NCBI GenBank assembly: GCA_002269645.1 | Contig: NIVC01001260.1 | Coordinates: forward strand, 39,487 to 103,486 | Source of the DNA: Macrostomum lignano | Taxonomy: Eukaryota | Length of the DNA stretch: 64,000 nucleotides | Direction: 5' to 3' | Shown: positions 4,426-49,559 of the stretch, in pieces | How the letters are laid out: every line of letters starts with the position of its first letter | How positions within the stretch are numbered: position 1 is the first letter of the stretch | The notes under the pieces: model-generated | Database searches by the model: none | Told to the model about the DNA's origin: nothing | Seen by the model: the letters and a program-made list of their open reading frames with translations, nothing else | Translations under genes and position numbers: made by a program

Positions 4426-5555
4426 CTAGGAAACGAGTAGTTCAAACTCCCTCATGGTGTAGTAATAGCCGAATGGCAAATACCAGTTAATACCAGAAGC
4501 AAAAGACGCTGTGCTCAGAGCCGAGGGCGGTGTGAAGTACAGGCCGTTTGGGTTGGTTTAGTGACAATTTGCGTACCACCAACCTCCTTTGTAGAGCATA
4601 CTGCAACTCTGTTGAGACCTAAGGTCGTTGTCTGAATCGTATTCGTTGCACCAGGCCATGCAGTCTCTCAGACTCGGGTGGCTGCCATGTAAACCGGAGA
4701 CACTCAAACGGAACTTGTCGGTCTCGCTGGCCACGGAGAAGCTGGAGTAGTCGGCCCAGAACTCCGTGCCATTCCACAGCCTCATTCGCATGCGAAGTGC
4801 TCGACCAGACGGCCAGGTCAGAGAGTGCACAGCTCGCAGACCTGCAGTTGTCAAGCACAGCTCAATGCTGAGCAGCTCACAGCCACAGGAGGCCAGCGCT
4901 ATCAAAAAGTGCATCAATACCGTCATGACCGCACTGCACTGCACTCACCGAGCCAGTGGTTCGTGTGGGCTCCCTCTCCGAAGCCGGCTGCGTACTCGGT
5001 CCAGTTGCGATAGAAGTCTGTCGAGTTGTCCGCCCGACGCTGGATGCTGATCCAGCAGTCGCTGAGTGACGTCACAAACACCTGCAGTGAGGCATTGAGA
5101 GCTGCGGTCAGGCAAGTGCTGTCAGTTACCTGGCTGTCAGGTGAGTCAGTGCACGCTTGCTACTCACCCTGATGCAGCACGGAGACTGGTGAGTGTGAGG
5201 CGTCAGTCTGCGACACACAGCGCCACTTCGGCTTGCTGGAATGCGAATGAGCTCAGCTGGGTGAGCAGCTTCATCAGGTTTAAGGCATCGAGCATGCAGC
5301 CAGGACTCACTCACCCACGATGCACTGGGGCTGCTGAGCACCGTCTCGAGGGATGAAGACCAGCAGCTGGTGAGCGAGCAGGTGCTTGGCAGCCTGTGCA
5401 GCGCACTGCAGCACATCGCTGGCTTGGTTGATGGAGGAGACGAAGAAGTGGCGGACTCGACCGCCCGACCAGCTGCTGCTGTGCACCTCATTTAGGATGA
5501 CAGCAGCAGAAGTTGTTGTCAAGGCAACTGTTAGGAATGCCAGCAGTTGATTCAT
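4426..5555 (-). pseudogene. FReD paralogue A (signal peptide, N-terminal domain, fibrinogen C domain); premature TAA at 4560-4558 and an in-frame 15-nt deletion removing the GMKFST region
   Basis: Exons ~5555-5315, 5235-5168, 5081-4949, 4841-4426. Motifs IQRRVDxSTDFYRNWTEYAAGFG and GGWWY. After the stop the frame continues TNPNGLY...REFELLVS*. Confidence 0.85.
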
Positions 5556-6384
5556 TGTTGGGAAGTTAAAATCGTGTAGCTGAATGGCGCGATTTTGTGC
5601 TGCAGCTGCAGTCTACGCTCGAAGTCCTTGGAGTTCTGCAGCTCTTCGGAGCTTGCTGGAATCCCGTTTTTATCAGAATTTGCTGCCATTCATCCATCCT
5701 TGTGATTGGTCTGCAGCTCTTGGCCCTCTTCTTGTCATCAGTGTTGCACACTGTCTATACTCTATAGAATCTCTCTGGCATTGTTCTTCACTGAGCGTCA
5801 GTCAATGTGTCTAAAAGTAGCTTTCTTTGTTTAAGTTAGAACCCCTAAATTTTCTACTCTAGCAAATTTGAAGTATACTTGCATAGCCGCTTGAGATGAG
5901 AACTGAGCTTTACATGTAGAGCTGTGCGGAGAGTTTGCTCAAAATTGTTGTTGGAAAATTGTTTTGTGTTAGGGGCAAGGGCGTTCACTGCTTAGTTTCT
6001 TACCCCATTTTTACGCTGCTCAAATCTGTCGTTTAATTCGTCTTTGTTTACCCCATCTTACAATATCGATCTAACAAAAATGCAAGGTTTTCTAAATCTT
6101 TTTTCTAACGCGGATGCACTCTTAATTTCTTTCCCGTTGTTAGGCATGTACACATGCCTACATTCTGAGCATCTAAGTAGTGCCGCAGTTTAGGATAGAC
6201 ATGGATAAAGCTGATTAATCCATGTAGAGATGCACTCATGTTTCACTTTAGTTTCATTATAGAGCAGAGTAGAGTGATGTGTCCTTCAAGAGCAAAAGCT
6301 CGGGTCGTATATTAGTATTAAATAAATTATGCATTCATTCTGGCGTCGAAGGCACTATACCCACATTTCTCAAAGGACTTCGCA

Positions 6385-7535
6385 ATGCATAAAGCACTGC
6401 TCCATCTCATTCTTCTGCACGCGATTAGTGTTTCAGGGCAGATTTCGCTGCCCGAAGTGCACAGCAGCAGCTGGTCGGGCGGTCGAGTCCGCCACTTCTT
6501 CGTCTCCTCCATCAACCAAGCCAGCGATGTGCTGCAGTGCGCTGCACAGGCTGCCAAGCACCTGCTCGCTCACCAGCTGCTGGTCTTCATCCCTCGAGAC
6601 GGTGCTCAGCAGCCCCAGTGCATCGTGGGTGAGTGAGTCCTGGCTGCATGCTCGATGCCTTAAACCTGATGAAGCTGCTCACCCAGCTGAGCTCATTCGC
6701 ATTCCAGCAAACCGAAGTGGCGCTGTGTGTCGCAGACTGACGCCTCACACTCACCAGTCTCCGTGCTGCATCAGGGTGAGTAGCAAGCGTGCACTGACTC
6801 ACCTGACAGCCAGGTAACTGACAGCACTTGCCTGACCGCAGCTCTCAATGCCTCACTGCAGGTGTTTGTGACGTCACTCAGCGACTGCTGGATCAGCATC
6901 CAGCGTCGGGTGGACAACTCGACAGACTTCTATCGCAACTGGACCGAGTACGCAGCCGGCTTCGGAGAGGGAGCTCACACGAACCACTGGCTCGGTGAGT
7001 GCAGTGCAGTGCGGTCATGACGGTATTGATGCACTTTTTGATAGCGCTGGCCTCCTGTGGCTGTGAGCTGCTCAGCATTGAGCTGTGCTTGACAACTGCA
7101 GGTCTGCGAGCTGTGCACTCTCTGACCTGGCCGTCTGGTCGAGCACTTCGCATGCGAATGAGGCTGTGGAATGGCACGGAGTTCTGGGCCGACTACTCCA
7201 GCTTCTCCGTGGCCAGCGAGACCGACAAGTTCCGTTTGAATGTCTCCGGTTTCCATGGCAGCCATCCCGCGATGTACGACAGCCTCGCTTCGCACAATGG
7301 AGCCATGTTCAGCACCTTAGATTCTGACAACGATGGTAGTTCAGGTCACTGCAGCACCTACTACAAAGGAGGCTGGTGGTTTTCAAGCTGCTACATGTGC
7401 AGTCCTAATGGTTTGTACTACAACCCACCTGAGGCGCTGGAAACCGCCATTAACAATGGAATCGTTTGGAAATTTCCATTCGGTGCTGGCTACTCGATGC
7501 AGGAGTTCGAGATTCTTGTGTCCGCTAAAGCCTAA
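6385..7535 (+). CDS. FReD paralogue B, secreted fibrinogen-related (ficolin/angiopoietin-like FBG domain) protein, apparently intact
   Basis: Exons 6385-6628, 6708-6775, 6862-6994, 7102-7535 with GT-AG and consistent phases. IQRRVDNSTDFYRNWTEYAAGFG, NHWLGL, FSTLDSDND, GGWWFSSC and PNGLY motifs; hydrophobic signal peptide. Confidence 0.9.
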
Positions 7536-8809
7536 AAGCCAGCTGCTGGGAACGTTATTGAAGGTTAAAACTAGACCTTTACGCCGAAATGATAAGTCTA
7601 CTTCTTGGCTTCGAATACTGACTGATTTAGGTAACTTTTAGTGACCATTGATAAGGCTGATCCTATCTAAGGCTCTGTTCGAGTTTTCGAACTGTGCAAT
7701 TCGTTTAAACAATGATTTTTTACAGAATACTACGAGCGTGGTTGTTAAGAAATGATTACAAATATGGATGGAAGATCTTGGACTTTGTTGCGGGAGCATT
7801 AAATTAAAAGCAACTTTAAAATACACTTGATTTAGACTGGAATAGCGCGGGACAGAGCTGATATATGCAGTACAGCACCAAGGACGCCAGCACCAAGATG
7901 TGGTACGGGTATAGCGAAGAAACTCGCAAGACATGAAACTTAGACTTTGGTGTCTCAGGGATCACGGAAGTGAAAAATCCCTGTTGGGCAAATAATAAAG
8001 GAAAAGCGCGAGATCTTCGATCTGCTTGCATAGAAGTTTTGATACTTTCGGAGAGGAATTGACGCTAATATTTGCGGATGATTTGTGTGGTATCTTGCTA
8101 ACCAAACAAAGCTTCCAGACTTGATGCAATGATCGCATTCTTTGCATGGATATTCTTCTACATGTACATGTAGGCTTCGTATACATACATCAACCAATTT
8201 AATTGGATGTTGCTTTGAATTTAATTAAAAATTGTATTTTCAAGTAAATTTAATTTGGAACTATAGCATCCAATACATCTAAGAGTACATGTACGTACGT
8301 GCAGTCTAATGTTGCGTTGATGGAAGATCATCATCCGGAAGTGTATTGGCAGTTTTCAGGGTGACGTGCAGTGGTGCTAATTATTGTTGATTGTTGCATG
8401 TAATTTCTTGCCAATTCATGAGTTACTACATGTAGGTACATACATATGTATTCGTACATGTATACTCATATATAACACTCGCTGCATGGTCTTAATCCCT
8501 ATCCACATATACATAGGACACAGCAGCCCCTAATTAGCTACTGTGCATCCAGCATGGATACTGTATATGATTGGGTCCTGCATGCATTGGCGCTGCTGCG
8601 ACGTGAGCGTGAAAAGTTGCCATCAACTTTGCAAAAAGTAAGTTTATCCCAACTTACTTTTTGTATCCTCGTATGCGCGTATGGACGTTCATCTGAATTG
8701 TGTCGAGCGGAAATGGATTCAAAAACTCATAAGTCAAGACTATATATATAGTAGCTGATCAAACGGCGTATACTAACGGCCTAACTGAAAGATACTAAAA
8801 ACACAAAAA

Positions 8810-9581
8810 TGTGTCAGCAAAAAGTGGTCACCTTTTTTCGCTGGATTTCAAGCATAGATGGACCGGTTTTGCCTCAGCTAATTATTGCTCCACTAGTAGG
8901 TTGATTAAAGTTATGCAAATCGATGCAGAATGTGAGCATACTGTCGACATCTTTGACAAATAGCTGCTTTTACATTGCACTGACGTATGACATCGTTATC
9001 CGCGGATGCAATATGTAAAAGCACATACTTTCATCGACGTCGATAGACGTTGGTAACGTAATGTAGCTGCCACCAAACAACGACTTCGTCTTCACTCTCT
9101 ACTCTGAACTCTAACAACCATGTCATGCAATTAAAAATGCGCTACAATACACAACCGTATTCAGGTGTTCTGAAGTGTATCGTTGAACACCATCGGACAA
9201 ACTGATGCAGACTTCTGAATTGGATTCAGAAAAAAGCATGCAAGCAGCAATCGGGGAATGGAAAGGAAAATTTATCTTTGGATTCATCATGATCCCATCC
9301 ACTGTTCCATCTGTTTTTGTTGATTGGTTTCTTTTCCTTTTTAGGGCATCCGTTATTACACATATTTTGCGTTCATTCCTCTTTCCAACGTCAGAAAAGT
9401 TTTTAGCGTATTTCACTTTCAATAACAGATATGCATGTACTGCATATTCCCTGCATCGATTTGAGACATAACAGGCGTATAGCTTTTAAGCAGCCTAGTG
9501 AAGGATGTTGAGGCGAAACCGGCATTCTATGTGTGGAATCGAGCGAAATAGGTGACCACTTTTTATTTTGAGTTGACACAC
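8810..9581. mobile_element. Degenerate MITE/non-autonomous DNA transposon with ~130-bp imperfect terminal inverted repeats
   Basis: Three motif pairs in mirror order: TGTGTCAGCAAAAAGTGGTCACCT (8810) vs AGGTGACCACTTTTT...TTGACACA (9551-9581); ACCGGTTTTGCCTCAGC vs GTTGAGGCGAAACCGG; GTTATGCAAATCGATGCAG vs CTGCATCGATTTGAGACATAAC. No clear TSD. Confidence 0.65.
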
Positions 9582-14767: not shown

Positions 14768-16001
14768 ATGGCTCCAATTGTTGTCACCCTGCCAGATGGC
14801 AGCAGCGATGCGAGGATTGCTGCTCAGACGGCTTCCATTGCCGAACTGAAAGTCTGGGCAGCCAGCCGTTGCGGCCTGTCTCCACTGCAGTTGGGCGTCT
14901 TTGCCGCTTCTGGTGCCGCGCTTGACGATGCCGACTCTTTGGTCGGTCTGGACTGTGCTGAACTGCAGGTTTGTCAGCTGAGCTTGTATTCGATTCACTA
15001 TTTATAGATTTAGGAATTCCATGCAGGCTCATCTGAAAGATCAAAAATTTATCACGAGCACGAATTCACAACTGAAAGGTCGGGGGGATTCCCTACAGAC
15101 CCACAACTGATGGATCCAGGGGATTTCCCACAGACCCACATCTGTAGGATCGGAGGGGATTCCCCACAGACCCACATCTGTAGGATCAGAGGGGATTCCC
15201 CACAGACCCACAACTGTAGGATCAGAGGGGATTCCCCACAGACCCACATCTGTAGGATCGGAGGGGATTCCCCACAGACCCACATCTGTAGGATCAGAGG
15301 GGATTCCCCACAGACCCACAACTATAGGATCAGATGGGATTCCCCACAGACCTACAACTGTAGGATCGGAGGGGATTCCCCACAGACCCACAACTGTAGG
15401 ATCGGAGGGGATTCCCCACAGACCCACAACTGTAGGATCGGAGGGGATTCCCCACAGACCCACAACTGTAGAATCGGAGGGGATTCCCCACAGACCCAAC
15501 TACTGTAGGATCAGAGGGGATTCCTTACAGACCCAAAAATGAAGAATTGGCGGATTCCCACAGACCCACAACTGAAGGGGGGAATTCCTACAGACCCACA
15601 ACTGAAAGATAAGGGGATTCCCCACAGACCCACAACTGAAAGATAAGGGGATTCCCCAGAGACGCACAACTGATGGCTCAGGGTTCCTATTGCATCTCAG
15701 TCCGGTCTACCGCGTAGTATATCAGGAAACAAAATTCTCACCAATACACGAATGCGGACTAATCTCACACATGCATCGCTAATCTCCCTGCCAGGTGCAG
15801 GCCCTGCTGCCCGGCGGCAAAGTGCACGGTTCGCTGGCTCGCGCCGGCAAAGTGCGCGGCCAGACGCCTAAAGTGGCCAAACAGGAGAAGAAGAAAAACA
15901 AAACCGGCCGGGCTAAGCGGCGAATCCAGTATAACAAACGGTTTGTTGCCACCGTCAACCTGCCTGGCGGTCGTCGCCGCGGTCCCAATGCCAACTCTTA
16001 A
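14768..16001 (+). CDS. FAU: Ubiquitin-like FUBI-40S ribosomal protein S30 fusion (exons 14768-14968, 15795-16001; ~135 aa)
   Basis: GG|[26 protein letters not shown]...RRIQYNKRF is the RPS30 signature; phase-0 GT-AG intron joins an N-terminal Ubl-sized domain. Confidence 0.95.
15080..15670. repeat. 36-bp minisatellite (GGGGATTCCCCACAGACCCACAACTGTAGGATCGGA)n in the FAU intron
   Basis: Direct tandem copies, about 15. Confidence 0.95.
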
Positions 16002-16254
16002 TTCTTAGAAATCATGTTCAAGACTGATTTATTGCTTATTCAGCAAGTCAGCAATGTGAAACTATTAAACGAACTGATTAAAATTTTGTGACTCCAGTCT
16101 TTGGCAGTCTTTGGAGCGGCTTGGATTGAAAAAAAACAACGCGTGTCTGTGTTTGTGTCTTTGCCCTTTTGAATTTTTAGCAACAACTAGTAGTTAAGTA
16201 AGTGTCGAGGGTATATTTTCCTAATTAGGCGTATCCTATTTATCATAATCAGGA

Positions 16255-17220
16255 AATTAGGTATTTTTCCAAATTAGGTATGTTTCCTAATCAGGTATGT
16301 TTTCTAACTAGGTATGGTTCCAAATTAGTTATGGTTCCAAATTATGTATGGTTCCAAATTAGGTATGGTTCCAAATTATGTATGGTTCCAAATTAGGTAT
16401 GGTTCCAAATTAGGTATGGTTCCTAATCAGGTTTGTTTCTAATTAGGTATGGTTCCAAATTAGGTATGGTTCCAAATTAGGTATGGTTCCAAATTAGGTA
16501 TGGTTCCAAATTAGGTATGGTTCCAAATTAGGTATGGTTCCAAATTAGGTATGGTTCCAAATTAGGTATGGTTCCAAATTAGTTATGGTTCCAAATTAGG
16601 TGGGTTTCCAAATTAGGTATGGTTCCAAATTAGGTATGGTTCCAAATTAGGTGGGTTTCCAAATTAGGTATGGTTCCAAATTAGGTATGGTTCCAAATTA
16701 GGTGGGTTTCCAAATTAGGTATGGTTCCTAATTAGGTATGGTTCCAAATTAGGTATGGTTCCTAATCAGGTTTGTTTCTAATTAGACATGGTTCTAAATT
16801 AGGTATGTTTCCTAATCAGGTATGTTTTCTAACTAGATATGGTTCCAAATTAGGTATAGTTCCAAATTAGGTATAGTTCCAAATTAGTTATGGTTCCAAA
16901 TTAGGTATGGTTCCAAATTAGGTATGGTTCCAAATTAGGTATTTTTCTAATTAGATATGGTTCCAAATTAGGTATTTTTCTAATTAGATATGGTTCCAAA
17001 TTAGGTATTTTTCTAATTAGATATGGTTCCAAATTAGATATTTTTCTAATTAGATATGGTTCCAAATTAGGTATTTTTCTAATTAGATATGGTTCCAAAT
17101 TAGATATTTTTCTAATTAGATATGGTTCCAAATTAGGTATGTTTCCTAATTAGGTATGTTTCCTAATTTGGTGTGTTTCCTTATTTGGTATGTTTCCTAA
17201 TTAGGTACTTTTCCAAATTA
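16255..17220. repeat. 17-bp minisatellite (TTAGGTATGGTTCCAAA)n with a 33-bp higher-order variant near 16900-17130
   Basis: Direct. Confidence 0.95.
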
Positions 17221-18391: not shown

Positions 18392-19153
18392 ATGGCACGC
18401 CGGTACGATACTCGCACTACAACATTCTCGCCAGAGGGCCGCCTGTACCAGGTAGAATACGCCATGGAAGCTGTAGGACACGCTGGCACCTGTATGGGCA
18501 TACTGGCTCGCGATGGAATCGTACTGGCTGCTGAGAGGCGCAATATTAACAAACTGTTAGACGAGCCGGCCTTCTCTGAGAAAATCTACATTATTAATGA
18601 CGATCTGTGCGTAGCAGTGGGCGGCATCACAGCCGATGCTAATGTGCTCATCGATGAGATGCGTTTAAGCGCTCAACGCTACCTGCTGCAGTACCAGGAG
18701 CCAATGCCTGTTGAGCAGCTGGTGTCCTCTATCTGCGATATCAAGCACGCCTACACAATGTTTGGCGGCAGGCGACCATTCGGTGTCAGCATGCTGTACT
18801 CTGGCTGGGATCTGAACTACGGCTTCCAGCTCTATCAGAGCGATCCCAGCGGCAACTTCAGCGGCTGGAAGGCCACCTGTATTGGCAGCAATGCAGCCGC
18901 TGCCAACAGCATGCTGGACCAGGAGTACACAGAAAATATGAGCATTGATGAGGCGCTCAGCCTCACTATTAAAGTGTTGAACAAATCCATGACAATGAGC
19001 AAGTTATCTGCCGACAAGGTGGAGGTGGCCGTGTTCACTCGGAAAGAGGGTCACACCTATCTGAGCCTGCTGCCTCAGTCTAAAGTTGAGAAGCTCATCA
19101 AGGATCTGGAGGAGGCCGAACTAGCCAAGAAGGAGGCGGAGAAGAAAACCTAA
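18392..19153 (+). CDS. PSMA4: 20S proteasome subunit alpha type-4 (alpha3), intronless CDS
   Basis: [34 protein letters not shown] and [18 protein letters not shown]. Confidence 0.97.
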
Positions 19154-19809
19154 GCTGAATTGTTTTAAACTGTCATTGTTTAAAACGAATGTCGGATATA
19201 TAATTATTCATTAACTTCTTTCCCAGTGTGTTCACTTCGTCTACGCAAATTACGCAAAAAAACCTGCGCGCCAGAAATTTACTACTTAGTAAACGAGTAG
19301 GCTAATAGTCGTATCATTAATAGTATTTATTTTAGGTTGAATAAGTGAACGCTTATCTGTATACCTGTTATCTGACCGAGGAAAAGTAATAAAAATGCAA
19401 TGTCCCTAACTGGGTTTTTGTACCCAGTAGTAATTTTCTGTTCAAGTCTAGTATATTCAGGTGCCGATAATATTTAAGAAATAAATTGTTCAAACTTCAA
19501 TGGCTCCTTTAAGCCCAGCGCAAGCACCAGATGAGTGCGTGTTGCTTACAATTTTTGCAGTTTTTTTCATAATCTAGCGCAAATTTTTATTGAATTTTAT
19601 ATGATTTTTATTACTAAACGTTTTTAAAGGCAGTAATAGAACTCTATTCCATTAATTTATTTGCATGGATTTTGCTTCAGAACTAACCATATGCAGTGTA
19701 ACTGCTTATTCAATATACTCGTAAAATTACTAAATTTAGGTATGGTATTTGAATGTTATGCTGCATGCTCTGAAATCCCATCAAAGTTGAGGCAGATTCA
19801 ATGGCACAT

Positions 19810-21015
19810 TAAAAAGCAGACTCAGAACAGCGGCAGATTCAATGGCAGATTCAGAACAGCGGCAGATTCGATCAATAGCAGATTCAGAACAGTGGCAGAT
19901 TCAATAGCAGATTCAGAACAGTGGCAGATTCAATAGCAGATTCAGAACAGTGGCAGATTCAATAGCAGATTCAGAACAGTGGCAGATTCAATAGCAGATT
20001 CAGAACAGTGGCAGATTCAATAGCAGATTCAGAACAGCGGCATATTCAATAGCAGATTCAGAACAGTGGCAGATTCAATAGCAGATTCAGAACAGTGGCA
20101 GATTCAATAGCAGATTCAGAACAGTGGCAGATTCAATAGCAGATTCAGAACAGCGGCATATTCAATAGCAGATTCAGAACAGTGGCAGATTCAATAGCAG
20201 ATTCAGAACAGTGGCAGATTCAATAGCAGATTCAGAACAGTGGCAGATTCAATAGCAGATTCAGAACAGTGGCAGATTCAATAGCAGATTCAGAACAGTG
20301 GCAGATTCAATAGCAGATTCAGAACAGTGGCAGATTCAATAGCAGATTCAGAACAGTGGCAGATTCAATAGCAGATTCAGAACAGTGGCAGATTCAATAG
20401 CAGATTCAGAACAGCGGCATATTCAATAGCAGATTCAGAACAGTGGCAGATTCAATAGCAGATTCAGAACAGTGGCAGATTCAATAGCAGATTCAGAACA
20501 GTGGCAGATTCAATAGCAGATTCAGAACAGTGGCAGATTCAATAGCAGATTCAGAACAGCGGCAGATTCAATGGCAGAGTCAGAACAGCAGCACATTCAA
20601 TAGCAGATTCAGAACAGTGGCAGATTCAATAGCAGATTCAGAACAGTGGCAGATTCAATAGCAGATTCAGAACAGCGGCAGATTCAGAACAGCGGCAGAT
20701 TCAATGGCAGATTCAGAACAGCAGCACATTCAATAGCAGATTCAGAACAGCGGCAGATTCAATAGCAGATTCAGAACAGCAGCACATTCAATAGCAGATT
20801 CTGAACAGCGGCAGATTCAATGGCAGATTCAGAACAGCGGCACATTCAATAGCAGATTCAGAACAGCAGCACATTCAATAGCAGATTCAGAACAGCAGCA
20901 CATTCAATAGCAGATTCTGAACAGTGGCAGATTCAATGGCAGATTCAGAACAGCGGCACATTCAATAGCAGATTCAGAACAGCGGCAGATTCAATAGCAG
21001 ATTCAGAACAGCGGC
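19810..21015. repeat. 29-bp minisatellite (AGCAGATTCAGAACAGTGGCAGATTCAAT)n
   Basis: About 40 tandem units. Confidence 0.97.
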
Positions 21016-21180: not shown

Positions 21181-24100
21181 ATGCTGTCGCAGACTCTGCG
21201 CTCCATCGCACCTAATCGCCGCGGCGTGTTGTTGGCTGCCGCAGCGGTCAAGTTGAGCACATCGTCGACTTTGCGGTTAAGTTCAAATTTGCCACCGCTA
21301 GCGTCCTCGCTTTATCCTCCGATTAGTGCAGACGGTCGAAGTCTTAGTCGCGGTCCATACAGTCGCATTGAACCGGCAGATCTGCTTGTATTTGCTGATA
21401 TTATCGGTCAGAATCATGTGATCACAGATCAGTTTGAGGTTTTTGCGGCTAACACTGATTGGCCGAGAGACTGTCGAGGTCAGGGTGGTCACGTGCTGAG
21501 GCCGGGCTGCGCGGAGGAGGTGTCTGTGATATTGCGGCACTGCCAGAAGCGCAGGATTGCTGTTGTACCTCAGGGAGGCAACACCGGCCTGGCTGGAGGC
21601 GGCGTGCCCGTGTTTGACGAGCTGGTCCTGTCGCTTAGTAGAATGAATCGAGTGCTTGAGGTGTGCGGAGTTTTGTGATTCCTTCTTTTCAGAGAATCCT
21701 TGCATCCAGGACAGTGAACGTTCAAGAAATCAGTGTTCCTTTGTTGTCATTATTATTCATCCACACGTGTCTGGCCATTATTTTCACTCCTTCACTCTTC
21801 ACATCTTACACTCCATGTCTCCTTGGCTCCATTGTTCCACTCCGTGTCAGTTTGTCGCCATTATCTTCACTCCATGTCAATTTTTCGCCATTATCTAGCT
21901 TTACTCCATGTCAGTTTGTCACCACTATAATTTTTTTACTCTAAAACTATCTCAACTCAAATCGAACTCCAAGATTGACGCCGTGGCAGGCACAGTGGTT
22001 GCCGAGGCGGGCTGCGTCCTGGCCGATCTGGACTCTCACCTGTCTGAGCACGGTCTCACTGTGCCGCTAGATCTTGCCGCCAAAGGTAGCTGCCAGATTG
22101 GCGGCAATTTATCCACTAACGCGGGCGGAATTTGTGTGCTACGCTACGGTTCGCTTCGCGGCTCAGTTCGTGGATTGGAAGTTGCGCTGGCTAACGGAGA
22201 GTTGATTGACTGCGGTAGAGTTAACGAGCACGAGAGTAGGCTGGTACAGCTGATGATTGGCAGCGAAGGCACGCTGGGCGTATTGACTAAAGTGACGTTG
22301 GCGTGTCCGCCTAGGCCTGCTAATGTCCGGCTGGTTCTGATTGGCTGCGATAGCTTTCAGGTTTGCCCATGGTTGTTCGTTATTTCTTAGAAAATATAAT
22401 TCTGCGGGCACCCTGGCGCAACGCTTTCGGCGACATTGTCCTGCAACCAGCGCTGAGGCAATTCCGCTGACTCCTGAGTGCGCACATAGGGTGTACAGCG
22501 ATTTAGACCATGGGTCGGCAAACTCCGGCCCGCGGAGCCTCTCTATCCAACCCCCTCAGGTTCTTTGAAATTTCACAATAGCAATCCGGCCCGCTCAATG
22601 TTTGTCTCTTCTCAGTTCTCTCCCTCTCTTTTCTCTCCTCTCCTCTCTCCTCTAATCTATTCTCTCGTCTCCACTCCTTTCATTTCTCCTCTCATCTTGT
22701 CACACTGGGCACTTAACTGTCTGTCAAGGTCAGAGGATGACATCAAGCAGTTCCCCTGAGCCGTGGGTCAGAAGTGAAAGCCACAGATAGTCAGTCGGTC
22801 CAGCAATCCTAAGAGTTGGGGGGCCGTAGCCCAGCGGTAGCGCAGCTGCTCTGGTGTGCCAGCGACCCAGGCTCGATTCCAAGTGCAGTCACATTAATTT
22901 GGGGCTGAATTGGAATCTCGGCTTGGCTCTGCTCGTGCAATTAACGGCCTTGAGAGCCAACCCCCAAGGCGCAGTGAAGTGTACATGCCTAACGATAAAA
23001 TAAAGTTAGGGCCGCTGTACACTCCTGTGTGAGTGTGTGCCTGCGTACGTATCCGCGCGCTTGTGTGCCTGCTCAGGGGAGTCGGCGGAATGGGCAGTAA
23101 TGCCTCTCGCCGGTTGTGTGCCTATGTCGCTTAAAGTGCGCCAGGGTGCACACAACCCCCCTGCCTCTAATAAAAAAAAATCCTAAGAGTTGCCTTGAAC
23201 TCCTGGGTTGCCATTCCAGAATAGAGTTAGGGCTCAAGTTCCTCTGCATCATCCACCATGATCTTAATATCCGCAGTCGGTGCTTCATCTATTCTCGGCC
23301 GCTCGCAGTACCCTGGCCGAGACTCTGTCCGCATTTGAGATCATGGACGCCGCTACTATGTCGGCCGTGTCAGATAATCTCAAACTAAATTGTCCGCTTA
23401 GCGGCAGTAGCGAGTTCTTTGCCCTGGTTGAAACCGCCTCTTGCAATGCTAGCGGCTCGAATGATGCCGGCAAGTTGGATAGGTTTTTGGAATGCCTGGT
23501 CTCTCTCAACCATGGTGAGTAACCGTGTATAGGAGGGCACTTGATGAAGTTTATAGGGTTCGTATCTGAGAAGGATGTACGAACGTAGGATATAGATTTT
23601 AGACCAATCAATCTAGACATTTAGATAGAGATATATAGAAGATATCAGTCAAGTCCAAAGACATTGATTGATATCGGGAGAGGATTCTTATATAAAGTTA
23701 AGGGCTCTTATAAATTTGAACTTATTTATAATGATCTAAAAAACTTGATTAGAAAGATCTAAAGAAATTATTAAAGAGATCTATAGAAATTGATTAGAGA
23801 GATCTAGATACATTTATTAGAAAGATCTAGAGCCTTTGGTCAGAGAGATCGAAAGACATTGATTAGAAAGATCTAGAACCTTTGGTCAGAGAGATCTAGA
23901 GACATTGATTAGAGAGATCTAGAGACATTGATTAGAGAGATCTAGAGACATTGATTAGAGAGATCTAGAGACATTGATTAGAAAGATCTAGAACCTTTGG
24001 TCAGAGAGATCTAGAGACATTGATTAGAAGATCTAGAGACATTGATTAGAAAGATCTAGAGACATGATTAGAGAGATCTAGAGACATTGATTAGAGAGAT

Positions 24101-24940
24101 CTAGAGACATTGATTAGAAAGATCTAGAGCCTTTGGTCAGAGAGATCTAAAGACATTGATTAGAAAGATCTAGAACCTTTGGTCAGAGAGATCTAGAGAC
24201 ATTGATTAGAGAGATCTAGAGACATTGATTAGTGATATCTAGAGACTATCATTATCGATCTTCAGGTTTTATAATGAGCTACGAGCTATATGCCTCTCCA
24301 GAGACTTGATGCATATTCAAAAGCTTAAATAGCAATATAGAACCTTTTACATATATCTAGAGATTTTGTAGAGATCTATACAGATCGGTCATACATGTAG
24401 GATCAGAGGTTGATAAAAAATGCACTTAAAGTATAACAAAAACTCGTCAGAAAGCGCCGGCTCCATCGACGCCGTTATATCAAACGATTCGCGCCAATTT
24501 GGCGTCATCTGGGCGCTAAGAGAGCGCGCATTTGAGGCGCTGGTGGCCGACTGCGGACCGGCCGGTGGCTACATGCAGTTTGATGCGTCAGTGTCCGACA
24601 GGCTGGACATGCAGCGGCTTGTGCTGGCCACCAGGGCAGAGTTCGGCCAGCTCGATTGCGTCATTCGCGTGGCCGGTTTTGGTCACCTTGGCGACGGTAA
24701 TTTGCACCTGGTGGTGACGGCGGATCCAGCCGGGGCTGCCGGCTGCGGCCTGTGGCCCCGCGTGGAGGCCTTCGTCTACGGCTGGCTGTCCCGGCGGCGG
24801 GGCTCCATCAGCGCTGAGCACGGCCTGGGCTGGAAGCGGAGCGCGTACCTGGGTGAGGGCTGGCGGACAGGCAGACAGACAGACAGACACACAGACAGGC
24901 AGACAGACAGACAGACAGATAGACAGGCAGACAGACAGAC

Positions 24941-24975
<35 letters not shown>

Positions 24976-25389
24976 TAGACAGACAGACAGACAGACAGAC
25001 ACTAAGAGAGACACTAAGACAGACACTAAGACAGACACTAAGACATACTAAGAGAGACACTAAGACAGACACTAAGACAGACACTAAGACATACTAAGAC
25101 AGACACTAAGAGAGACACTAAGACAGACACTAAGACAGACACTAAGACATACTAAGACAGACACTAAGAGAGACACTAAGACAGACACTAAGACAGATAC
25201 TAAGACAGATACTAAGACAGACACTAAGACAGACACAGTCAGCCAGTCAGAGCACTATTTATGCCATCCGCAGGTCACTGCAAGAGCCCAACAGCTGTAT
25301 CCGTGATGGCGGGCATCAAGCGACTGCTGGATCCCCAAGGGATTCTCAATCCGTACAAAGTTCTGCCACCCTCGGCACTATCATATTGA
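21181..25389 (+). CDS. D2HGDH: Mitochondrial D-2-hydroxyglutarate dehydrogenase (exons 21181-21660, 21974-22360, 23277-23514, 24451-24852, 25274-25389; ~540 aa)
   Basis: VVPQGGNTGLAGGGVPVFDE, KGSCQIGGNLSTNAGG, IGSEGTLG, GHLGDGNLH, GSISAEHGLG, ILNPYKVLP. All splice phases are consistent; N-terminus is transit-peptide-like. Confidence 0.95.
22507..22600 (+). mobile_element. Possible hAT-family MITE terminus in D2HGDH intron 2
   Basis: CATGGGTCGGCAAACTCCGGCCCGCGG resembles hAT/Charlie ends (CAGGGGTCGGCAAAC..CGGCCCGC); matching opposite end not found. Confidence 0.4.
22819..23178 (+). mobile_element. Full-length tRNA-derived SINE (~360 bp) with A-rich tail and 14-bp TSD
   Basis: Pol III A-box-like TAGCCCAGCGGTAG, B-box-like GCTCGATTCC and TAATAAAAAAAAA tail. 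TSD AATCCTAAGAGTTG at 22805-22818 and 23179-23192. Confidence 0.85.
23600..24245. repeat. ~23-bp minisatellite (GAGATCTAGAGACATTGATTAGA)n in D2HGDH intron 3
   Basis: Direct, degenerate at the 5' end. Confidence 0.9.
24865..25235. repeat. (GACA)n grading into 12-bp (GACAGACACTAA)n in D2HGDH intron 4
   Basis: Direct. Confidence 0.95.
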
Positions 25390-27896: not shown

Positions 27897-28666
27897 ATTT
27901 TTATTGCCTTAACTCAGAATTCCAGCCTAAGGCTGCCATGTACATTTCAGAGGCTAAATGTACATTATTTCTGAACCTGTTTACGCCTGCAAGCTTGGCC
28001 TTCTAAACTTATCAAAGTCATTTCAGCTGCCTTTTTTATAAAATAGCTTCTGTATTCGTCTTTGCTACTGAACTGATAGTAGAAAGCTGTTTTACTAAGC
28101 ATACAGCCCATCTAGTTATTTTAGTATCTGTGGCCAGAGTTTATAATGAAATCTGATAAACAACAGAAAAAGCATCGCTTCAGCTGAGACACTACCGTCA
28201 GCCCCCCTGAACCACTTTCTACCCCCATCAATATTGTGTACTTTTTCGTCCTTTTTACACAACATGCCGACATCCTTTGTTGGATTGCAAACTCTAGTTA
28301 AACTGTCTCTAGTTCATTCTTAAACCTTTTTATTGAAGAGTTTTCAACTTTTTAAACAGTTAGTCAACGTCTTCTGCTTCCTGTGCGCTTCGATTTAAAA
28401 TCCGGCTATAAGCACAGCTATTTATCTATAATTATACTATTTATGTATTTTTATCTTACATTCAATGTAAGATTGGTGGCGAAATGTACACTGACACTGA
28501 TAAAATAAAGTTAATAATTTTAAGCTTCGATTTCTAATCATAAACGCGTACGACTAAGTTTGTACTTAAATTCGTTATTTATTTTTGCAACGCAACTGTT
28601 GCACAAATTACGCAACGCTATACTATTCAGGTTCCGAAAAGACAGCCAGAATCCAGTAAACTCCAC

Positions 28667-29805
28667 TCAGATAAGCATCTCGATTTCCTTGACTGAATAG
28701 TAGTAGCCAAATGGAAAGTACCAGTTGATTCCCACGGCGAACTCTTCCGTGTGCAGAGCAGCGGGTGGATAAAAGTACAAACCGTTTGGATTCGTCCTGT
28801 GGCACGCCGAGTACCACCAACTTCCGCGGAACTTCTTGGCGCAGTTCCGCATCGATACGTCATTGTCCTTGTCGTGGGTGCTGAACTTCATCCCGTTGCA
28901 CCAGGTCATGCAGTCTCCCAGACTCGGGTGGCTGCCATGGAAACCGGAGACATTCAACCGGAACTTGTCGGCCTCGCTGGCCACGGAGAAGCTGGAGTAG
29001 TCGGCCCAGAGCTCCGTGCCATTCCACAGCTTCATTCGCATGCGAAGTGCTCGACCAGACGGCCAGGTCAGAGAGTGCACAGCTCGCAGACCTGCAGTTG
29101 TCAAGCACAGCTCAATGCTGAGCAGCTCACAGCCACAGGAGGCCAGCGCTATCAAAAAGTGCATCAATACCGTCATGACCGCACTGCACTGCACTCACCG
29201 AGCCAGTGGTTCGTGTGGGCTCCCTCTCCGAAGCCGGCTGCGTACTCGGTCCAGTTGCGATAGAAGTCTGTCGAGTTGTCCACCCGACGCTGGATGCTGA
29301 TCCAGCAGTCGCTGAGTGACGTCACAAACACCTGCAGTGAGGCATTGAGAGCTGCGGTCAGGCAAGTGCTGTCAGTTACCTGGCTGTCAGGTGAGTCAGC
29401 GCACGCTTGCTACTCACCCTGATGCAGCACGGAGACTGGTGAGTGTGAGGCGTCAGTCTGCGACACACAGCGCCACTTCGGTTTGCTGGAATGCGAATGA
29501 GCTCAGCAGGGTGAGCAGCTTCATCAGGTTTAAGGCATCGAGCATGCAGCCAAGACTCACTCACCCACGATGCACTGGGGCTGCTGAGCACCGTCTCGAG
29601 GGATGAAGACCAGCAGCTGGTGAGCGAGCAGGTGCTTGGCAGCCTGTGCAGCGCACTGCAGCACATCGCTGGCTTGGCTGATGGAGGAGACGAGGAAGTG
29701 GCGGACTCGACCGCCCGACCAGCTGCTGCTGTGCACCTCATTGAGGATGACAGCAGCAGAAGTTGTTGTCAAGGCAACTGTTAGGAATGCCAGCAGTTGA
29801 TTCAT
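28667..29805 (-). CDS. FReD paralogue C, apparently intact
   Basis: Exons 29805-29565, 29485-29418, 29331-29199, 29091-28667; FSTHDKDND, GSWWYSAC, TNPNGLY. Confidence 0.88.
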
Positions 29806-30535
29806 TGTTGGGAAATCGAAAACGTGTTTGGCTGAAGGGTGCGATTTTGCGCTGCAGCTGCAGTCTACGCTCGAAGTCCTTGGAGTTCTGCAGCTCTTCG
29901 GAGCTTCCTGGATGGAGTCCCGTTTTTAACAGACAATTTGCTGCCATTCGCTGCGTGTTCTACTAACATCCTTGTTTGTTATTGGCCCTCTTCTTGTGCC
30001 AAGAATATTTTATCAGTGATATGCGCTGTTTTGCTGACACTGTTGGATCTTTACTTTTTATTGATAATTTTTAGCTCTTCTGTCCTACTCGAAGCCAGTG
30101 AAGCTGTCATGATAGAAACCTTTTATGACAAGCGTAGCAATTCGTTATAGGAGCATCTGGCCTCTGAAGTGCATTTTTTATTAGTTTACTCGTATTACTT
30201 GTTTTTTTAGCAATCATCATATTCTACAGAATTGATAATTTTTTACATCTGTTAGTCGTGCAGCTGTGTAACCTCCTGCTGTCAACAACCCTTTCTCACT
30301 GGCAGTTTTGACTGGCATTGCGCCGTAGGCTTTTTCTTCTCGCCTGGTATTTCTCAAGCCTTATTATTTTTCTTTATCAAATCGACTTGACAAATTGCGC
30401 AAATTTAGGAATAAATATAATGACAGTAGCCAGCAGTTTAAGGACTTGTTTCCCTTCAAACGCTTGTCCGTCTCTACAAGATGTTTTGCTACAGCAAATA
30501 AAATATACAAGAAAGACGATAATTAGTATTCAAAT

Positions 30536-30813
30536 TCAGCTCCTGTAACTATAATTCCGCAAAACCAGCAGCGCAGCGGCTTGGCGACAGGTTGATTCAG
30601 CAGCACCGAGGCAGCTGCTATTCGCTTTGCTGGTGCTCTCATTAGGCATGGACTTTTTCCTGTCCGATCTGCTTGGTGAAGCTGCAGCCTCTCTGTTGCT
30701 ACTGTTGTTAGTAGTCTCTCCAGGTCGCAAAGCTGTGCTAATTCTTCTGCCAATTTTTATCAGTCCGTCCTTGATGCTGGATCGACGTTTTACAGTTATT
30801 GGTGTTGAGGCTG
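30536..30813 (-). pseudogene. 5'-truncated, internally deleted copy of the disordered-protein gene at 35911-37004
   Basis: STPITVKRRSSIKDGLIKIGRRISTALRPG...KKSMPNESTS is near-identical to the 36667-36480 region; its 5' half is replaced by the LINE tail. Confidence 0.85.
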
Positions 30814-33572
30814 CTTGACTTGACTTTGACTTAGCTGCAGGGCTGTTCCGGAGGGGACACAGTGGGAAGGCGCAGACGCCCATTCCGCTGATCCCTGAAC
30901 GGCCGACGCGTCGCTATGGACGAAGGGTTGGCGCCGCCCAGGGAGGTCTCTGGTGTCGCAGCAGCTATGGTGCTCTCTGGAAAGGAGAGTTCAGCCCTGC
31001 GGGTGGCCCGGAGGTAGCGCATGATGCTCTCTGGCTCTCATGCTATCTGGACCTGGAACAACGTCGGAGTAGCGTTGTCTAAGCTGATTAAAATTTTCGG
31101 TTTTGCTCGCTTCAGTAATTGATGTGTGTGGCCCGAGGTAAGTGAGTCTGGCTCGCATGAAGGCGGGACAGATGCTGACGAAATGTTCAGCGGTTTCGTC
31201 ACCTGAGTTGCAAAAACTGCAGATGACGTTGGTGGTATTGCCCTGCAAGTACTGGTGCCTCGAAAAGCAGTCGTGACCTGAGAGGGTCATGTTGGCAGCC
31301 CGGATGTCTCTTTACGAGAGGCGCAAGAGGAGCTTCCGGAGCTGGTGAGAGGGCTGAGGGACAGCGCCTCTGGATTGCCTGCATGGAGTACAGTTCGACC
31401 AGGTCGAGCGGTGCTGGGTCCTGATCAACGCTTTGATGCGCGAGTCGATGACACAGCCAGGAATTGGGACAAGGGGTTCGGGACAGAGAGGAGCCGGAGG
31501 CACCAACTTTTGCAAGGGCGTCAGCCAACTCATTCCCTCGGATCCCCACATGCCCCGGAACCCACTTAAGGGTGATTTTGTTGGTGGAACCCAACATGTT
31601 GATGAGTTTGATACAGTCGAGGACTGTAGCAGAATTGACGCTGCAGCCACTGATGACGTGCAAGGCAGCTTGGCTGTCCGAATGGAAAATGATGTTCTAC
31701 CGGTTACGCCAGTGGCGAGAAGCTCTGCATTGCAAGAGCTGATGGCGAGAACTTCATTTTGGAAGACACTGGAGTTGACCCCAGTGTACTGAGCGTTGGT
31801 TGCGATGACCCGCCCGTTCAGGAAGATCCCAACACCAAAGCCGGTGTTGACTGACTGCTTAGAACCGTCGGTGTAGCAATGGAGCTCACCAGGGTTCCAG
31901 TGGTCATTGATGGTATCGCGCGGGTCGATAGCTACAGAGTAGCGTTGTCTCAGGTTGAGCGTTGAGGCAGTGCCATCGGTGAAGACGCGATTGGCCTGAC
32001 ACTCGTTGAGAAAGTTGAGGCACAGGTCGCTATGCGGGACGAGGTTCCGCTTAGCAGGTGCCCTCATGTAGAGGAATTCGACGCCGGCATCAAGTAAACA
32101 CCGCGTCGCTCTAGCCGCCTCACACCTGACGAAGAGGTCGAGTGGCGGTAGAACAAGGAAGGCCCCAGCAAAGGGTGTGGGCCTGGTGGCATTGCAGATA
32201 AGCCTACACGCCTTGCCCTAGATCGTGTTGAGCAAATCTGCATGGCTTTTGACCTGGGTGGCGCTGACCCAGACAACATAAGCGTACCTAATGGCAGGTC
32301 TAACCACGGAAGTGTAGATCCACCAAATACGCTTTGGGGATAAACCCCATGAAGTGCCAAGTGCCCACCGAGCTGGGCCAGGATGGCTGAGGCACGCTTG
32401 GCTTTTGCTTTCACGTGGAAGGACCAGTTGAGCCGGTGGTCTAGTATAACCCCGGGACATCTGGTCTGTTGCGAGAAGACAATATCTCTGCCGCATAGCT
32501 GCAGAGGCCTTATTCAGCGTATTCGATTGGTGAACATAATGGCAACAGCTTTGGGGCTCAGAGAGTTCCAAACCGTTGTCATTGGCCCAGGATTCTGCTT
32601 TGCGGATAAAGCTCTGCATCAGATCCCTGAGCGTGCTGGGGGACGGCCCAGCCACAATGGCAGTGACGTCGTCAGCATACCCGACTTTGAAGACGGGATC
32701 AGGTCGGGAGTCGCCCAGAAGAGCGTCCATGACCAGGTTTCAGAGCGTCGGGGTGAGGAATCCGCCTTGGGGTCCACCCTTACAGACTCTGGTGGAGGCA
32801 GTTTGCCCTAGGAGTTGGGCAGTGACCGTACGGTTAGAGATCATGTACATGATCCACCGTATGAGGGTAGCGTGAGCTTTGCGGTTTTGATGGGCCCTCT
32901 GAAACGCTTCAAAGAAAACGTTGTCTAAGGCGCCAACAATGTCGAGAAAAAGAGCCAGGGCGTAACCGTCACCCAGTACCGCCCGTTCAATCTTCTCGAC
33001 TATCGCATGCAGGGCGCTGTCAGTCGACCTCCCGGTACGGAAGGCGTGCTGATGATTGCTGAGGGGCATCGCTGTCAGCTCGCAAGAAAGCAGCCGCCAG
33101 AGAATAAGCCTCTCAGTGAGCTTAAGCATTGCTTATGTTAAGCTAATTGGCCTGAAGGCCTTGACGCTCTGGTAGTCACCCTTCCCAGGTTTGGGAATGA
33201 AGACTACCCGAGCTTCAGTCCAGCACTTGGGCACATACCCCAGCTGGATAGAGGCCCGCTGGATAAATTGCGGGTAAGTCTAAGAACGAGGGTATCTTGG
33301 CTACTTCACGGAGAACAGGGTAGATACCGTCGGGACCAGGAGATTAGAAAAGCTTGAAGGCTCTGACTGCACGAGTGATTTAATCTTGTTGGGTTGGGTT
33401 CCGATCTATAGCAGTGGGTACCCTCGGGAAGAATGTACTCCTGGGTCCTCCTGGTCCTCCAGAGAATCCTCAGGGTCCCGGTCTTCATGCACTGTGATGG
33501 AGGCTTTTGGCCTTCCGCCTGAGTTTCCCCAGCTCCGGGTTCCACCACGGCGCCGAGGTCTTGCCTCTGTAG
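30814..33572 (-). mobile_element. 5'-truncated, decayed non-LTR retrotransposon with RT, RNase H and C-terminal CCHC (I-group, LOA/R1-like)
   Basis: PWWNPEL, VFIPKPGK..KAFRPISLT, FLDIVGALD, PQGG, GYADD, RNase H YTDGSK..FQNEV, CSFCNSGDETAEHFVSICP. Stops and frameshifts; short (TCAAG)n 3' tail; APE endonuclease absent. Confidence 0.92.
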
Positions 33573-33769
33573 CCGGCTATAAGCACAACTATTTATCTAT
33601 AATTATGCTATTTATTTTTAATCTTATATTTAATGTAAGATTGGTGGCAAAATGTACACTGATAATATATATATTTCTTAATTTTAGGCTTCGGTTTCTA
33701 ATCATCGTAAGCACGTACGGCTAATTTTCGTATTTGGATTCGCTATTTACTCTCGTATTAACGAGCTAT

Positions 33770-35001
33770 TTATTTATTTATTTCGATGCACCCGTTGCAC
33801 AAATTACGCAACGCTTTAGTATTCGGGTTCCGAAAAGATAGCCAGAATCCAGTAAACTCCACTCTGACGAGCATCTCGATTTCCTTGACTGAATAGTAGT
33901 AGCCAAATGGAAAGTACCAGTTGATTCCCACGGCGAACTCTTCCGTGTGCAGAGCAGCGGGTGGATAAAAGTACAAACCGTTTGGATTCGTCCTGTGGCA
34001 CGCCGAGTACCTCCAACTTCCGCGAAACTGTTTGGTGCAGTTCCGCATCGATGCGTGATTGTCCTTGTCTTGGGTGCTGAACTTCATGCCATTGTGCTAG
34101 GCCATGCAGTCTCCAACGCTAGGGTGGCACGCGGAGAACCCCGAGATGCTCAGCCGGAACTTGTCGGCCTCGCTGGCCACGGAGAAGCTGGAGTAGTCGG
34201 CCCAGAGCTCCGTGCCATTCCACAGCCTCATTCGCATGCGAAGTGCTCGACCAGACGGCCAGGTCAGAGAGTGCACAGCTCGCAGACCTGCAGTTGTCAA
34301 GCACAGCTCAATGCTGAGCAGCTCACAGCCACAGGAGGCCAGCGCTATCAAAAAGTGCATCAATACCGTCATGACCGCACTGCACTGCACTCACCGAGCC
34401 AGTGGTTCGTGTGGGCTCCCTCTCCGAAGCCGGCTGCGTACTCGGTCCAGTTGCGATAGAAGTCTGTCGAGTTGTCCACCCGACGCTGGATGCTGATCCA
34501 GCAGTCGCTGAGTGACGTCACAAACACCTGCAGTGAGGCATTGAGAGCTGCGGTCAGGCAAGTGCTGTCAGTTACCTGGCTGTCAGGTGAGTCAGTGCAC
34601 GCTTGCTACTCACCCTGATGCAGCACGGAGACTGGTGAGTGTGAGGCGTCAGTCTGCGACACACAGCGCCACTTCGGTTTGCTGGAATGAGAATGAGCTC
34701 AGCTGGGTGAGCAGCTTCATCAGGTTTAAGGCATCGAGCATGCAGCCAGGACTCACTCACCCACGATGCACTGGGGCTGCTGAGCACCGTCTCGAGGGAT
34801 GAAGACCAGCAGCTGGTGAGCGAGCAGGTGCTTGGCAGCCTGTGCAGCGCACTGCAGCACATCGCTGGCTTGGTTGATGGAGGAGACGAAGAAGTGGCGG
34901 ACTCGACCGCCCGACCAGCTGCTGCTGTGCACCTCATTGAGGATGACAGCAGCAGAAGTTGTTGTCAAGGCAACTGTTAGGAATGCCAGCATTTGATTCA
35001 T
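33770..35001 (-). pseudogene. FReD paralogue D with in-frame TAG (34099-34097, where paralogue C has Trp), WW>WR change and loss of the normal stop (extended tail)
   Basis: Exons 35001-34761, 34681-34614, 34527-34395, 34287 onward; reads ...DCMA*HNGMKFSTQDKDN... Confidence 0.85.
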
Positions 35002-49558: not shown

Positions 49559-49559
49559 G

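Follow-up and report, generated by a model that had tools for sequence, protein, structure and literature searches.

What keeps the scaffold of a gene family nearly invariant, introns included, while the ligand-binding ends of its members stay far apart? The question is raised by a 64-kb stretch of DNA (the window) that carries four genes for proteins with a fibrinogen-related domain (FReD), here called A, B, C and D. The four are almost identical over a central tract that spans three introns, and most of them differ sharply in the C-terminal sequence that follows. Our analyses indicate that repeated non-allelic (interlocus) gene conversion among old paralogues is very probably the cause – that is, that this lectin family has undergone partial concerted evolution.

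Self-BLAST identified exactly four FReD copies, of ~0.8-1.45 kb, in the window (A 4644-5691, B 6454-7269, C 28575-30026, D 33770-35223), and tblastn of the intact FReD proteins against the whole window returned no copies beyond A-D. Each gene comprises four exons and three short GT-AG introns (58, 86 and 107 nt), and all four gene products are Fibrinogen_C proteins. We derived the following gene models:

4426-5555, minus strand: FReD gene A, pseudogene-like (exons 5555-5315, 5256-5168, 5081-4949 and 4841-4426)
6385-7535, plus strand: FReD gene B, an intact open reading frame (ORF) of 299 aa (exons 6385-6628, 6687-6775, 6862-6994 and 7102-7535)
28667-29805, minus strand: FReD gene C, an intact ORF of 288 aa (exons 29805-29565, 29485-29418, 29331-29199 and 29091-28667)
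33770-35001, minus strand: FReD gene D, pseudogene-like (exons 35001-34761, 34702-34614, 34527-34395 and 34287 onwards)

Genes A and B lie head-to-head with 829 bp from ATG to ATG, and their cores form an 814-bp inverted repeat of 99.1% identity with arms 964 bp apart. C and D are in direct orientation 5 kb apart, and 23 kb separates the A/B pair from the C/D pair. Support for exon 2 comes from database gene models, also from those of the diverged P0005/P0007 subfamily (P00xx numbers are our labels for the database proteins compared with genes A-D). A splice model without exon 2, which would keep the frame, was rejected on the grounds that the exon is present and conserved in these models.

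The nine best database matches are Macrostomum lignano proteins annotated as 'Fibrinogen C-terminal domain-containing proteins', as are the lower-ranked P0010, P0015 and P0016, and the source organism appears to be M. lignano or a very close relative. These database relatives (accessions A0A1I8...) come from a separate, older annotation that was not derived from this window and that holds about 25 gene models of the family with at least seven C-terminal end types. M. lignano is neopolyploid and hard to assemble (PMC10733133), which would account for the many near-duplicate gene models. We take A-D to be probable old paralogues of a secreted, FReD-only, lectin-like M. lignano family. Neither a family of this kind nor its pattern of conversion was found in the literature on Macrostomum or other flatworms.

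The homogenised core is 782 bp long and runs from EVHSSSW in exon 1 to ...DKFRL in exon 4, comprising parts of four exons and all three introns. In each copy it occupies alignment columns 859-1640:

4708-5489, minus strand: core copy of A
6454-7235, plus strand: core copy of B
28958-29739, minus strand: core copy of C
34154-34935, minus strand: core copy of D

Four-way alignment revealed just 14 variable sites in the core. Pairs of copies differ at 4-11 positions per 782 bp (0.5-1.4%; identity 98.6-99.5%), with A differing from B, C and D at 4, 11 and 6 sites, and synonymous divergence (dS) is 0-0.06. Private single-nucleotide polymorphisms number two in A, two in B, six in C and one in D, and three more sites separate A and B from C and D. 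The introns differ between pairs at 0-3 positions per 251 bp, and intron 3 at 0/107 in every pair. Since the introns are as identical as the exons, protein-level constraint is excluded as the cause; and since the core boundaries fall inside exons 1 and 4, so are exon shuffling and alternative exon use. Guanine-cytosine (GC) content is 61-62% in core exons and 55% in core introns; the ends have 49-53% and the flanks 32-42%. The elevated core GC fits GC-biased conversion without proving it.

Several database models of this family take an acceptor for intron 3 (present in all copies; for example B 6995-7101) that lies 60 nt upstream, which inserts ALASCGCELLSIELCLTTA in frame into the WLG strand. 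This may be a mis-annotation or an alternative isoform.

The ends look very different. Over the ~288 columns 3' of the core, A, B and C differ from one another at 96-121 of about 280 positions (35-42%), and C from D at 32/288. The contrast between core and end differences is significant across pairs (Fisher p from 2e-67 to 4e-13). Synonymous sites of the last ~95 codons are saturated (proportion of synonymous differences, pS, 0.68-0.91; dS above 1.7 or undefined) and dN is 0.27-0.46, giving an omega of about 0.2 or less. No alignment was possible for the 3' flanks of A, B and C or for the whole 5' region of B. The stretches that encode the ends, which belong to the P subdomain, are:

4429-4642, minus strand: end of A, with 43% nucleotide divergence from B and from C and a pS of 0.77-0.90
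7301-7532, plus strand: end of B, anciently diverged and with a remodelled S1 pocket
28670-28892, minus strand: end of C, of the C/D/P0001 type with DKDND and FRGSWW
33866-34088, minus strand: end of D, with 11/223 differences from C (dS 0.10, dN 0.04)

Comparison with the diverged subfamilies dates this contrast. Core amino-acid identity is 94-100% within the group of A-D, P0001-4 and P0006, 70% to P0005/P0007 and 48% to P0009. For the C-terminal part the values are 48-67% between end types, 43-64% to P0005/P0007 and 45-51% to P0009. By this measure the ends are about as old as the split from the P0005 subfamily, whose core is 30% different. The core has thus been homogenised recently, because the ends are as far apart from one another as from that of P0005, whose core, just 70% identical, never underwent homogenisation. 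The same holds for the younger pair: C and D diverge by 0.9% in the core, by about 15% plus indels in the flanks and by a dS of 0.10 in the 3' coding sequence, so that their core was homogenised after duplication.

These results uphold much of a preliminary description of this DNA made from its letters alone. The span that it gave, 4426-35001, is exact: it runs from the final nucleotide of A's terminal stop to D's ATG. Its near-identity over ~800 bp across three introns corresponds to the 782-bp core, its identical intron 3 was recovered in every pair, and C and D are indeed more diverged in their flanks than in their core, as it had said. It named uniform divergence along the genes and a constant tree topology as observations that would speak against conversion. 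We found 4-11 differences per 782 bp in the core against 96-121 per about 280 in the ends, and a topology that changes between adjacent segments (see below). Its probable flatworm host agrees with the nine best matches.

The boundaries of the near-identical tract differ between pairs of copies. Maximum likelihood placed the change-points as follows:

5' side, B against all: column 862 (B 6457)
5' side, A against C and D: column about 638 (A 5691)
5' side, C against D: column 682 (C 29906, D 35102)
3' side, D against all: column 1640 (D 34154)
3' side, A-B and B-C: column 1670 (A 4678, B 7265, C 28928)
3' side, A-C: column 1705 (A 4643, C 28893)

On the 5' side, self-BLAST and alignment extend the homology among A, C and D only (A 5490-5691, minus strand; C 29740-29949; D 34936-35140). 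This extension includes the signal peptide MNQLLAFLTVALTTTSAAVILN and, upstream of it, about 135 bp. B is unrelated there and has a signal peptide of its own type, MHKALLHLILLHAISVSGQ; the switch at EVHSSSW that the preliminary description had noticed coincides with the change-point at B 6457, upstream of which B cannot be aligned. The paralogue P0039, located elsewhere, joins the common core exactly at EVHSSSW, which is B's 5' boundary.

On the 3' side, the variable tract ends delimit a patch of ~65 bp directly after the core:

28893-28957, minus strand: patch in C (columns 1641-1705), LNVSGFHGSHPSLGDCMTWCN, A-like with 5/65 differences and 21/65 differences from D
34089-34153, minus strand: patch in D, LSISGFSACHPSVGDCMA*HN, patch type II

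Two deeply diverged versions of the patch occur – type I, (N/S)VSGFHGSHPSL.DCM, and type II, SISGFSASHP.VGDCM – and the synonymous sites of D's patch are saturated relative to C and A. D shares its type II patch with P0001, P0002, P0003, P0033, P0035 and P0036. Downstream of the patch C becomes D-like (11/223 differences) and unlike A (91/211). Informative sites grouping C with A and not D, against those grouping C with D and not A, accordingly stand at 19:3 within the patch and at 3:84 beyond it (p=2.7e-15). C-type ends carry type I in C and type II in D, P0001, P0033, P0035 and P0036, and P0003-type ends carry type I in P0042 and type II in P0003 and P0040. Because both patch types occur on both types of end, the four-gamete condition is violated. 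The pairwise homoplasy index (PHI) test is significant over core, patch and end together (p=0.0005).

Beyond the patch this signal disappears. The PHI test restricted to sequence downstream of it is not significant (p=0.06-0.32), triplet site patterns downstream of WCN are balanced (A=B 33, A=C 36, B=C 30), and max-chi2 permutation revealed no clustering (p=0.13-0.20). Mosaicism is real but local, demonstrable only in the patch just 3' of the core. Here the preliminary description needs amendment. It had called A C-like through ...WCN, in agreement with the 5/65 differences (20/65 to B). It had then read A as B-like at DSDND..YKGGWW and C-like again at TNPNGLYF. These motifs are the family consensus, from which the C lineage departed at DSDND/YKGGWW and B at TNPNGLYF, and the clustering test (p=0.13-0.20) lends the reading no support. 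Of the 'mosaic, hypervariable' ends that it described, the mosaic junction in the C/D patch stands (p=2.7e-15) and the hypervariability does not (saturated pS, omega about 0.2 or less). The ends are instead old and constrained, and purifying selection would have kept the sequence of each specific to its lineage.

A and D are both broken. The last exon of gene A is interrupted by a premature in-frame TAA at 4560-4558 (YANCH*TNPNG), and a deletion of four codons has taken out the conserved 'G-x-x-FST' segment that precedes the Ca2+ loop. P0037, a database protein of the A type, terminates at the identical stop and shares the deletion, so the lesion is real and present in another copy or assembly. 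In the last exon of gene D, a premature TAG at 34099-34097 takes the place of the Tyr, Phe or Trp of its relatives; the gene further carries a Trp-to-Arg change (GSWWY to GSWRY) and has lost its terminal stop, the next in-frame stop being at 33772-33770. The preliminary description had missed the premature stops in both genes, along with A's FST deletion, and had D differ from C only in the SISGF block – an account to which the 11 further downstream substitutions, the in-frame TAG, the Trp-to-Arg change and the lost terminal stop must be added. We considered D's DKDNH motif as a further sign of decay and rejected it; the change is common to the intact relatives P0033 and P0035.

Genes B and C are intact. 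The product of B is near-identical to the database proteins P0006 and P0048. In C alone, the upstream exon-2 acceptor (29506-29507; CAG|CTGAGC in database models) has TG in place of AG; a second acceptor, intact and in frame, follows 21 nt downstream. Through use of the latter, the product of C would be without residues ELIRIPA.

Taken together, these observations are best accommodated by the following history. The paralogues would have diverged long ago, as the saturated silent sites and the unalignable flanks and 5' end of B suggest. Repeated interlocus conversion would since have overwritten a central tract of ~0.8-1.05 kb, introns included, with exchange among the inverted A/B pair, the direct C/D pair and – as database sequences suggest – probably also copies elsewhere in the genome. 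Tract ends would have varied, from columns 638, 682 and 862 on the 5' side to 1640, 1670 and 1705 on the 3' side, and owing to these unequal tract ends the ~65 bp that follow the core would come in two diverged versions reassorted onto different ends. The P subdomain beyond the patch would escape conversion and keep its lineage-specific sequence under purifying selection. The boundary may persist because heteroduplexes cannot extend across ~40% divergence, because conversions that would wipe out distinct binding specificities are selected against, or both. A and D would have been disabled in their non-converted or patch part while conversion kept their cores pristine, as is expected of a process that acts regardless of function. 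Conversion here mainly homogenises.

Several considerations weigh against this account. Its basis is assembled sequence, in which assembly or polishing may have homogenised the cores in part. DNA was compared for the four copies only, exact-protein look-ups of P0003 and P0005 having returned no record, and the wider family is represented by predicted proteins, some of them mis-spliced or fused. The GC excess of the core may just reflect gene composition.

Pfam Fibrinogen_C (PF00147) matches B (E=2e-49) and C (E=1e-50) far over its gathering cut-off, from profile position 22/29 to position 218 of 221. An AlphaFold (AF2) model of B is confident over residues 119-299 (predicted local distance difference test, pLDDT, 80-96). 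Compared with the PDB by Foldseek, it matches ANGPTL2, L- and M-ficolin and FIBCD1 (E about 1e-17 to 1e-18; target template modelling score about 0.8), with a root-mean-square deviation of 1.6-1.9 A over about 190 residues to L-ficolin, M-ficolin and FIBCD1. The model thus predicts a FReD fold with B and P subdomains. The N-terminal ~118 residues (exons 1-2, for example B 6385-6775, and within the core) have no Pfam match and a pLDDT below 50. Pfam yields Fibrinogen_C only: there is no match to the immunoglobulin families, the mature N-terminal region being just about 95 residues without a known domain, and exons 1-2 contain no Gly-X-Y repeats. About 34 extra residues, mostly from exon 2, lie between the presumed second Cys of the A subdomain and the equivalent of the GGGWTV motif, which reads SDCWISI in the A-D family.

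We mapped the ligand site from sequence, using an alignment to ficolin-1 and the residue definitions and numbering of the FIBCD1 structure paper (PMC3908420). In keeping with the preliminary description, this mapping and the model of B place the variable end in the P subdomain, with its Ca2+ ligands, Cys401-Cys414 bridge and S1 pocket. In Ca2+-dependent acetyl-binding FReD lectins of the TL5A / M-ficolin / FIBCD1 type, the Ca2+ site is formed by Asp393, Asp395 and loop carbonyls, and the Cys401-Cys414 disulfide connects it to S1. Asp393, Asp395 and both cysteines are present in A, B and C, with a Cys-Cys spacing of 13. The Ca2+ ligand Asp395 varies within the C-type subgroup, being Asp in C, Asn in P0001 and His in D, P0033 and P0035; the last two are intact. 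The S1 pocket, scored at Tyr405, His415, Tyr431, Ala432 and Tyr/Trp443, differs between end types:

P0003, P0039 and P0005 types: Ca2+ site and pocket canonical
C, D and A: Tyr431 to Phe
P0004: Tyr431 to Glu and Tyr443 to Asn
B: His415 to Tyr, Tyr431 to Ile, Ala432 to Asn and Tyr443 to Ala

Because the end types differ at Ca2+-site and S1-pocket residues, distinct binding specificities are plausible, and we infer a possible lectin or immune function for the family.

The preliminary description had proposed conversion-driven diversification. Gene conversion does best explain the identical core, but it mainly homogenises, and shuffling is confined to the ~65-bp zone. Could a dedicated system, germline or somatic, nevertheless be creating new ligand-binding ends by conversion, with the pseudogenes A and D as donor cassettes? 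Patch types have been reassorted onto different ends, the cores of the two pseudogenes are still perfect, Ca2+-site and S1-pocket positions differ from end to end, and two columns beside the Ca2+ loop and the first Cys are variable in three or more subgroups (p about 0.05). Yet the ends are ancient and constrained, recombination is not significant beyond the patch, and the recurrence of variable columns across four subgroups is at chance (5 observed against 5.3 expected). Patch reassortment is its one positive support, and the net effect of conversion is homogenisation. We consider such a system unlikely.

A variant of this idea is somewhat harder still to credit. The locus could be a modular repertoire, in which a conversion-maintained scaffold carries selectively protected specificity cassettes while the patch zone, A and D form a reservoir for new combinations – one that might operate somatically in neoblast-derived flatworm tissues. 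If true, it would represent a FREP-like or pseudo-V-like mechanism in a phylum without a known one.

Assembly or polishing artefact, by which reads of many paralogues in a repeat-rich neopolyploid genome would have polished the cores into identity, strikes us as a rather remote explanation. It gains some credence from the difficulty of assembling M. lignano (PMC10733133), from a window full of tandem repeats and from the abruptness with which near-perfect identity ends. Against it, the cores have kept their private polymorphisms and the three sites that set A and B apart from C and D. The polymorphic F/L and T/A positions recur in the separate older annotation, where the F/L, T/A and N/S polymorphisms of the core are reassorted among all end types and the same core joins at least seven of them. 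Breakpoints differ between pairs and fall at sensible positions, and A's stop and deletion are reproduced in P0037.

Recent duplication followed by positive selection accelerating the ligand-binding end, as in conotoxins or venom PLA2, would also leave introns and core conserved, the functional end diverged and its pocket residues different. It is largely refuted by the saturated synonymous sites of the ends and a dN/dS well below 1. The unalignable 3' flanks and 5' region of B, and ends as diverged as that of P0005, whose core is also 30% diverged, likewise argue against it, and we regard it as very improbable. Purifying selection on a DNA or RNA element in the core (a non-coding RNA, a regulatory module or an overlapping ORF) would suit introns as conserved as exons and long open frames on both strands, but it is barely credible given that an Rfam scan of the window returned no matches, stop codons are not depleted in the core (46 against 44.5 in dinucleotide shuffles), the core of the P0005 subfamily is 30% different, and variable tract endpoints and shared polymorphisms fit exchange and not constraint.

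Antisense ORFs of 170 aa lie at 28751-29263 and 33947-34459 (plus strand), across exon 4, intron 3 and exon 3 of C and D. They are probably compositional, since core stop codons are not depleted relative to the shuffles.

The genes neighbouring A-D are ordinary. Pfam identified the following:

18392-19153, plus strand: proteasome alpha-subunit ORF, intronless (E=5e-53)
21181-25097, plus strand: FAD-linked oxidase, multi-exon (FAD_binding_4, FAD-oxidase_C)
58726-59160, plus strand: EF-hand protein
61217-62760, minus strand: carrier of the MFS/sugar-transporter type

Micro- and minisatellite arrays are very dense in the window (848-3935, 15046-16980, 19756-20840, 38267-39333, 40717-42500, 45490-49980, 50462-52460, 53821-54800, 56100-58700, 59124-61221 and 62906-63645). 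They have periods of 8, 9, 12, 15, 17, 19, 20, 22, 23, 24, 29, 32, 34 and 36 nt and give rise to long ORFs, spurious ones, in both orientations. P0039, a FReD paralogue located elsewhere, has a predicted N-terminus that is translated from an LKPLV 15-mer minisatellite of the same repeat family as that at 40717-42500.

Between C and D, ORFs at 31199-32811 (minus strand) have, by eye, the retroelement-like motifs YADD, TDGS and WVPGHxGIxGNExAD (RNase H-like), and Pfam scans of two of these ORFs returned no match at E<=0.001. The region is possibly a degenerate non-long-terminal-repeat element inside the C-D duplication interval. A 185-bp direct repeat of 97.8% identity is found upstream of C (30629-30813) and of D (36483-36667), at an offset that differs from that of the C-D duplication unit. 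Among the database models, P0041 is a fusion of two tandem P0004-type FReD genes, and tandem FReD pairs therefore occur elsewhere in the genome. In P0033, a FReD of the D/P0001 type is joined to DDE-transposase and retroelement sequence, probably by annotation read-through.

The locus offers a clear natural case in which a lectin scaffold is ~99% identical, introns included, and its ligand-binding subdomain has stayed apart until silent sites saturated. M. lignano is tractable – it can be cultured, is amenable to RNA interference and transgenesis, and has a recent whole-genome duplication – and allows study of how conversion-tract boundaries are set, by heteroduplex rejection or by selection for distinct specificities. 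There is also a practical consequence: reads or probes from the core cannot separate the paralogues of this family, and whole-gene trees will mislead. Finally, the analysis documents an undescribed flatworm FReD family whose members, differing at Ca2+-site and S1 residues, are candidate pattern-recognition lectins.

Human fetal globin HBG1/HBG2, the red and green opsins, RHD/RHCE and plant R-gene clusters are classic cases of partial concerted evolution. Like them, A-D combine a near-identical tract, including introns and silent sites, with far more diverged adjacent sequence, and show pair-specific breakpoints, polymorphisms common to paralogues and raised GC in the tract. The A-D family differs in the extremity of its contrast (about 1% against saturated synonymous sites) and in a boundary that lies within the last exon, where the ligand-binding subdomain begins. 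Exchange in the flatworm also appears to be multi-copy, involving inverted neighbours and pseudogenes in a neopolyploid genome. The conversion process itself is textbook gene-family evolution, of which this locus is a clean new example, with no evidence for a new diversification mechanism.

The gastropod fibrinogen-related proteins (FREPs), such as FREP3 and FREP2 of Biomphalaria glabrata, are likewise a multigene family with a C-terminal fibrinogen-related domain in which conversion has been implicated (PMC3313920, PMC7588048). FREPs have one or two immunoglobulin superfamily (IgSF) domains upstream of the fibrinogen (FBG) domain, and their diversification is reported as somatic (PMC3313920, PMC7588048). 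The A-D genes lack an IgSF domain in Pfam scans, are seen as germline paralogues only and are homogenised by conversion over most of their length. The analogy to snail FREPs drawn in the preliminary description fails on these points, and the absence of an IgSF domain means that A-D are not gastropod FREPs.

Tachylectin-5A/B, the ficolins and FIBCD1 share with the family the FReD fold and, in B and C, the Ca2+ ligands and the Cys401-Cys414 bridge. A-D are not ficolins, because they have no collagen-like region, and not FIBCD1-like, because they have no transmembrane anchor; the lack of a collagen domain is a likeness to tachylectin-5. They differ from all three in having SDCWISI for GGGWTV, with about 34 extra residues before this motif, and in having canonical S1 residues in some end types only, B being strongly remodelled. 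By their predicted sequence, the A-D proteins would be secreted, FReD-only and tachylectin-5-like.

Mosquito FREP/FBN proteins and the FReDs of oyster and amphioxus have arisen by lineage-specific tandem expansions of small secreted FReDs, presumed to be pattern-recognition lectins. The A-D family resembles them in being another lineage-specific expansion of small secreted FReDs arranged in tandem clusters.

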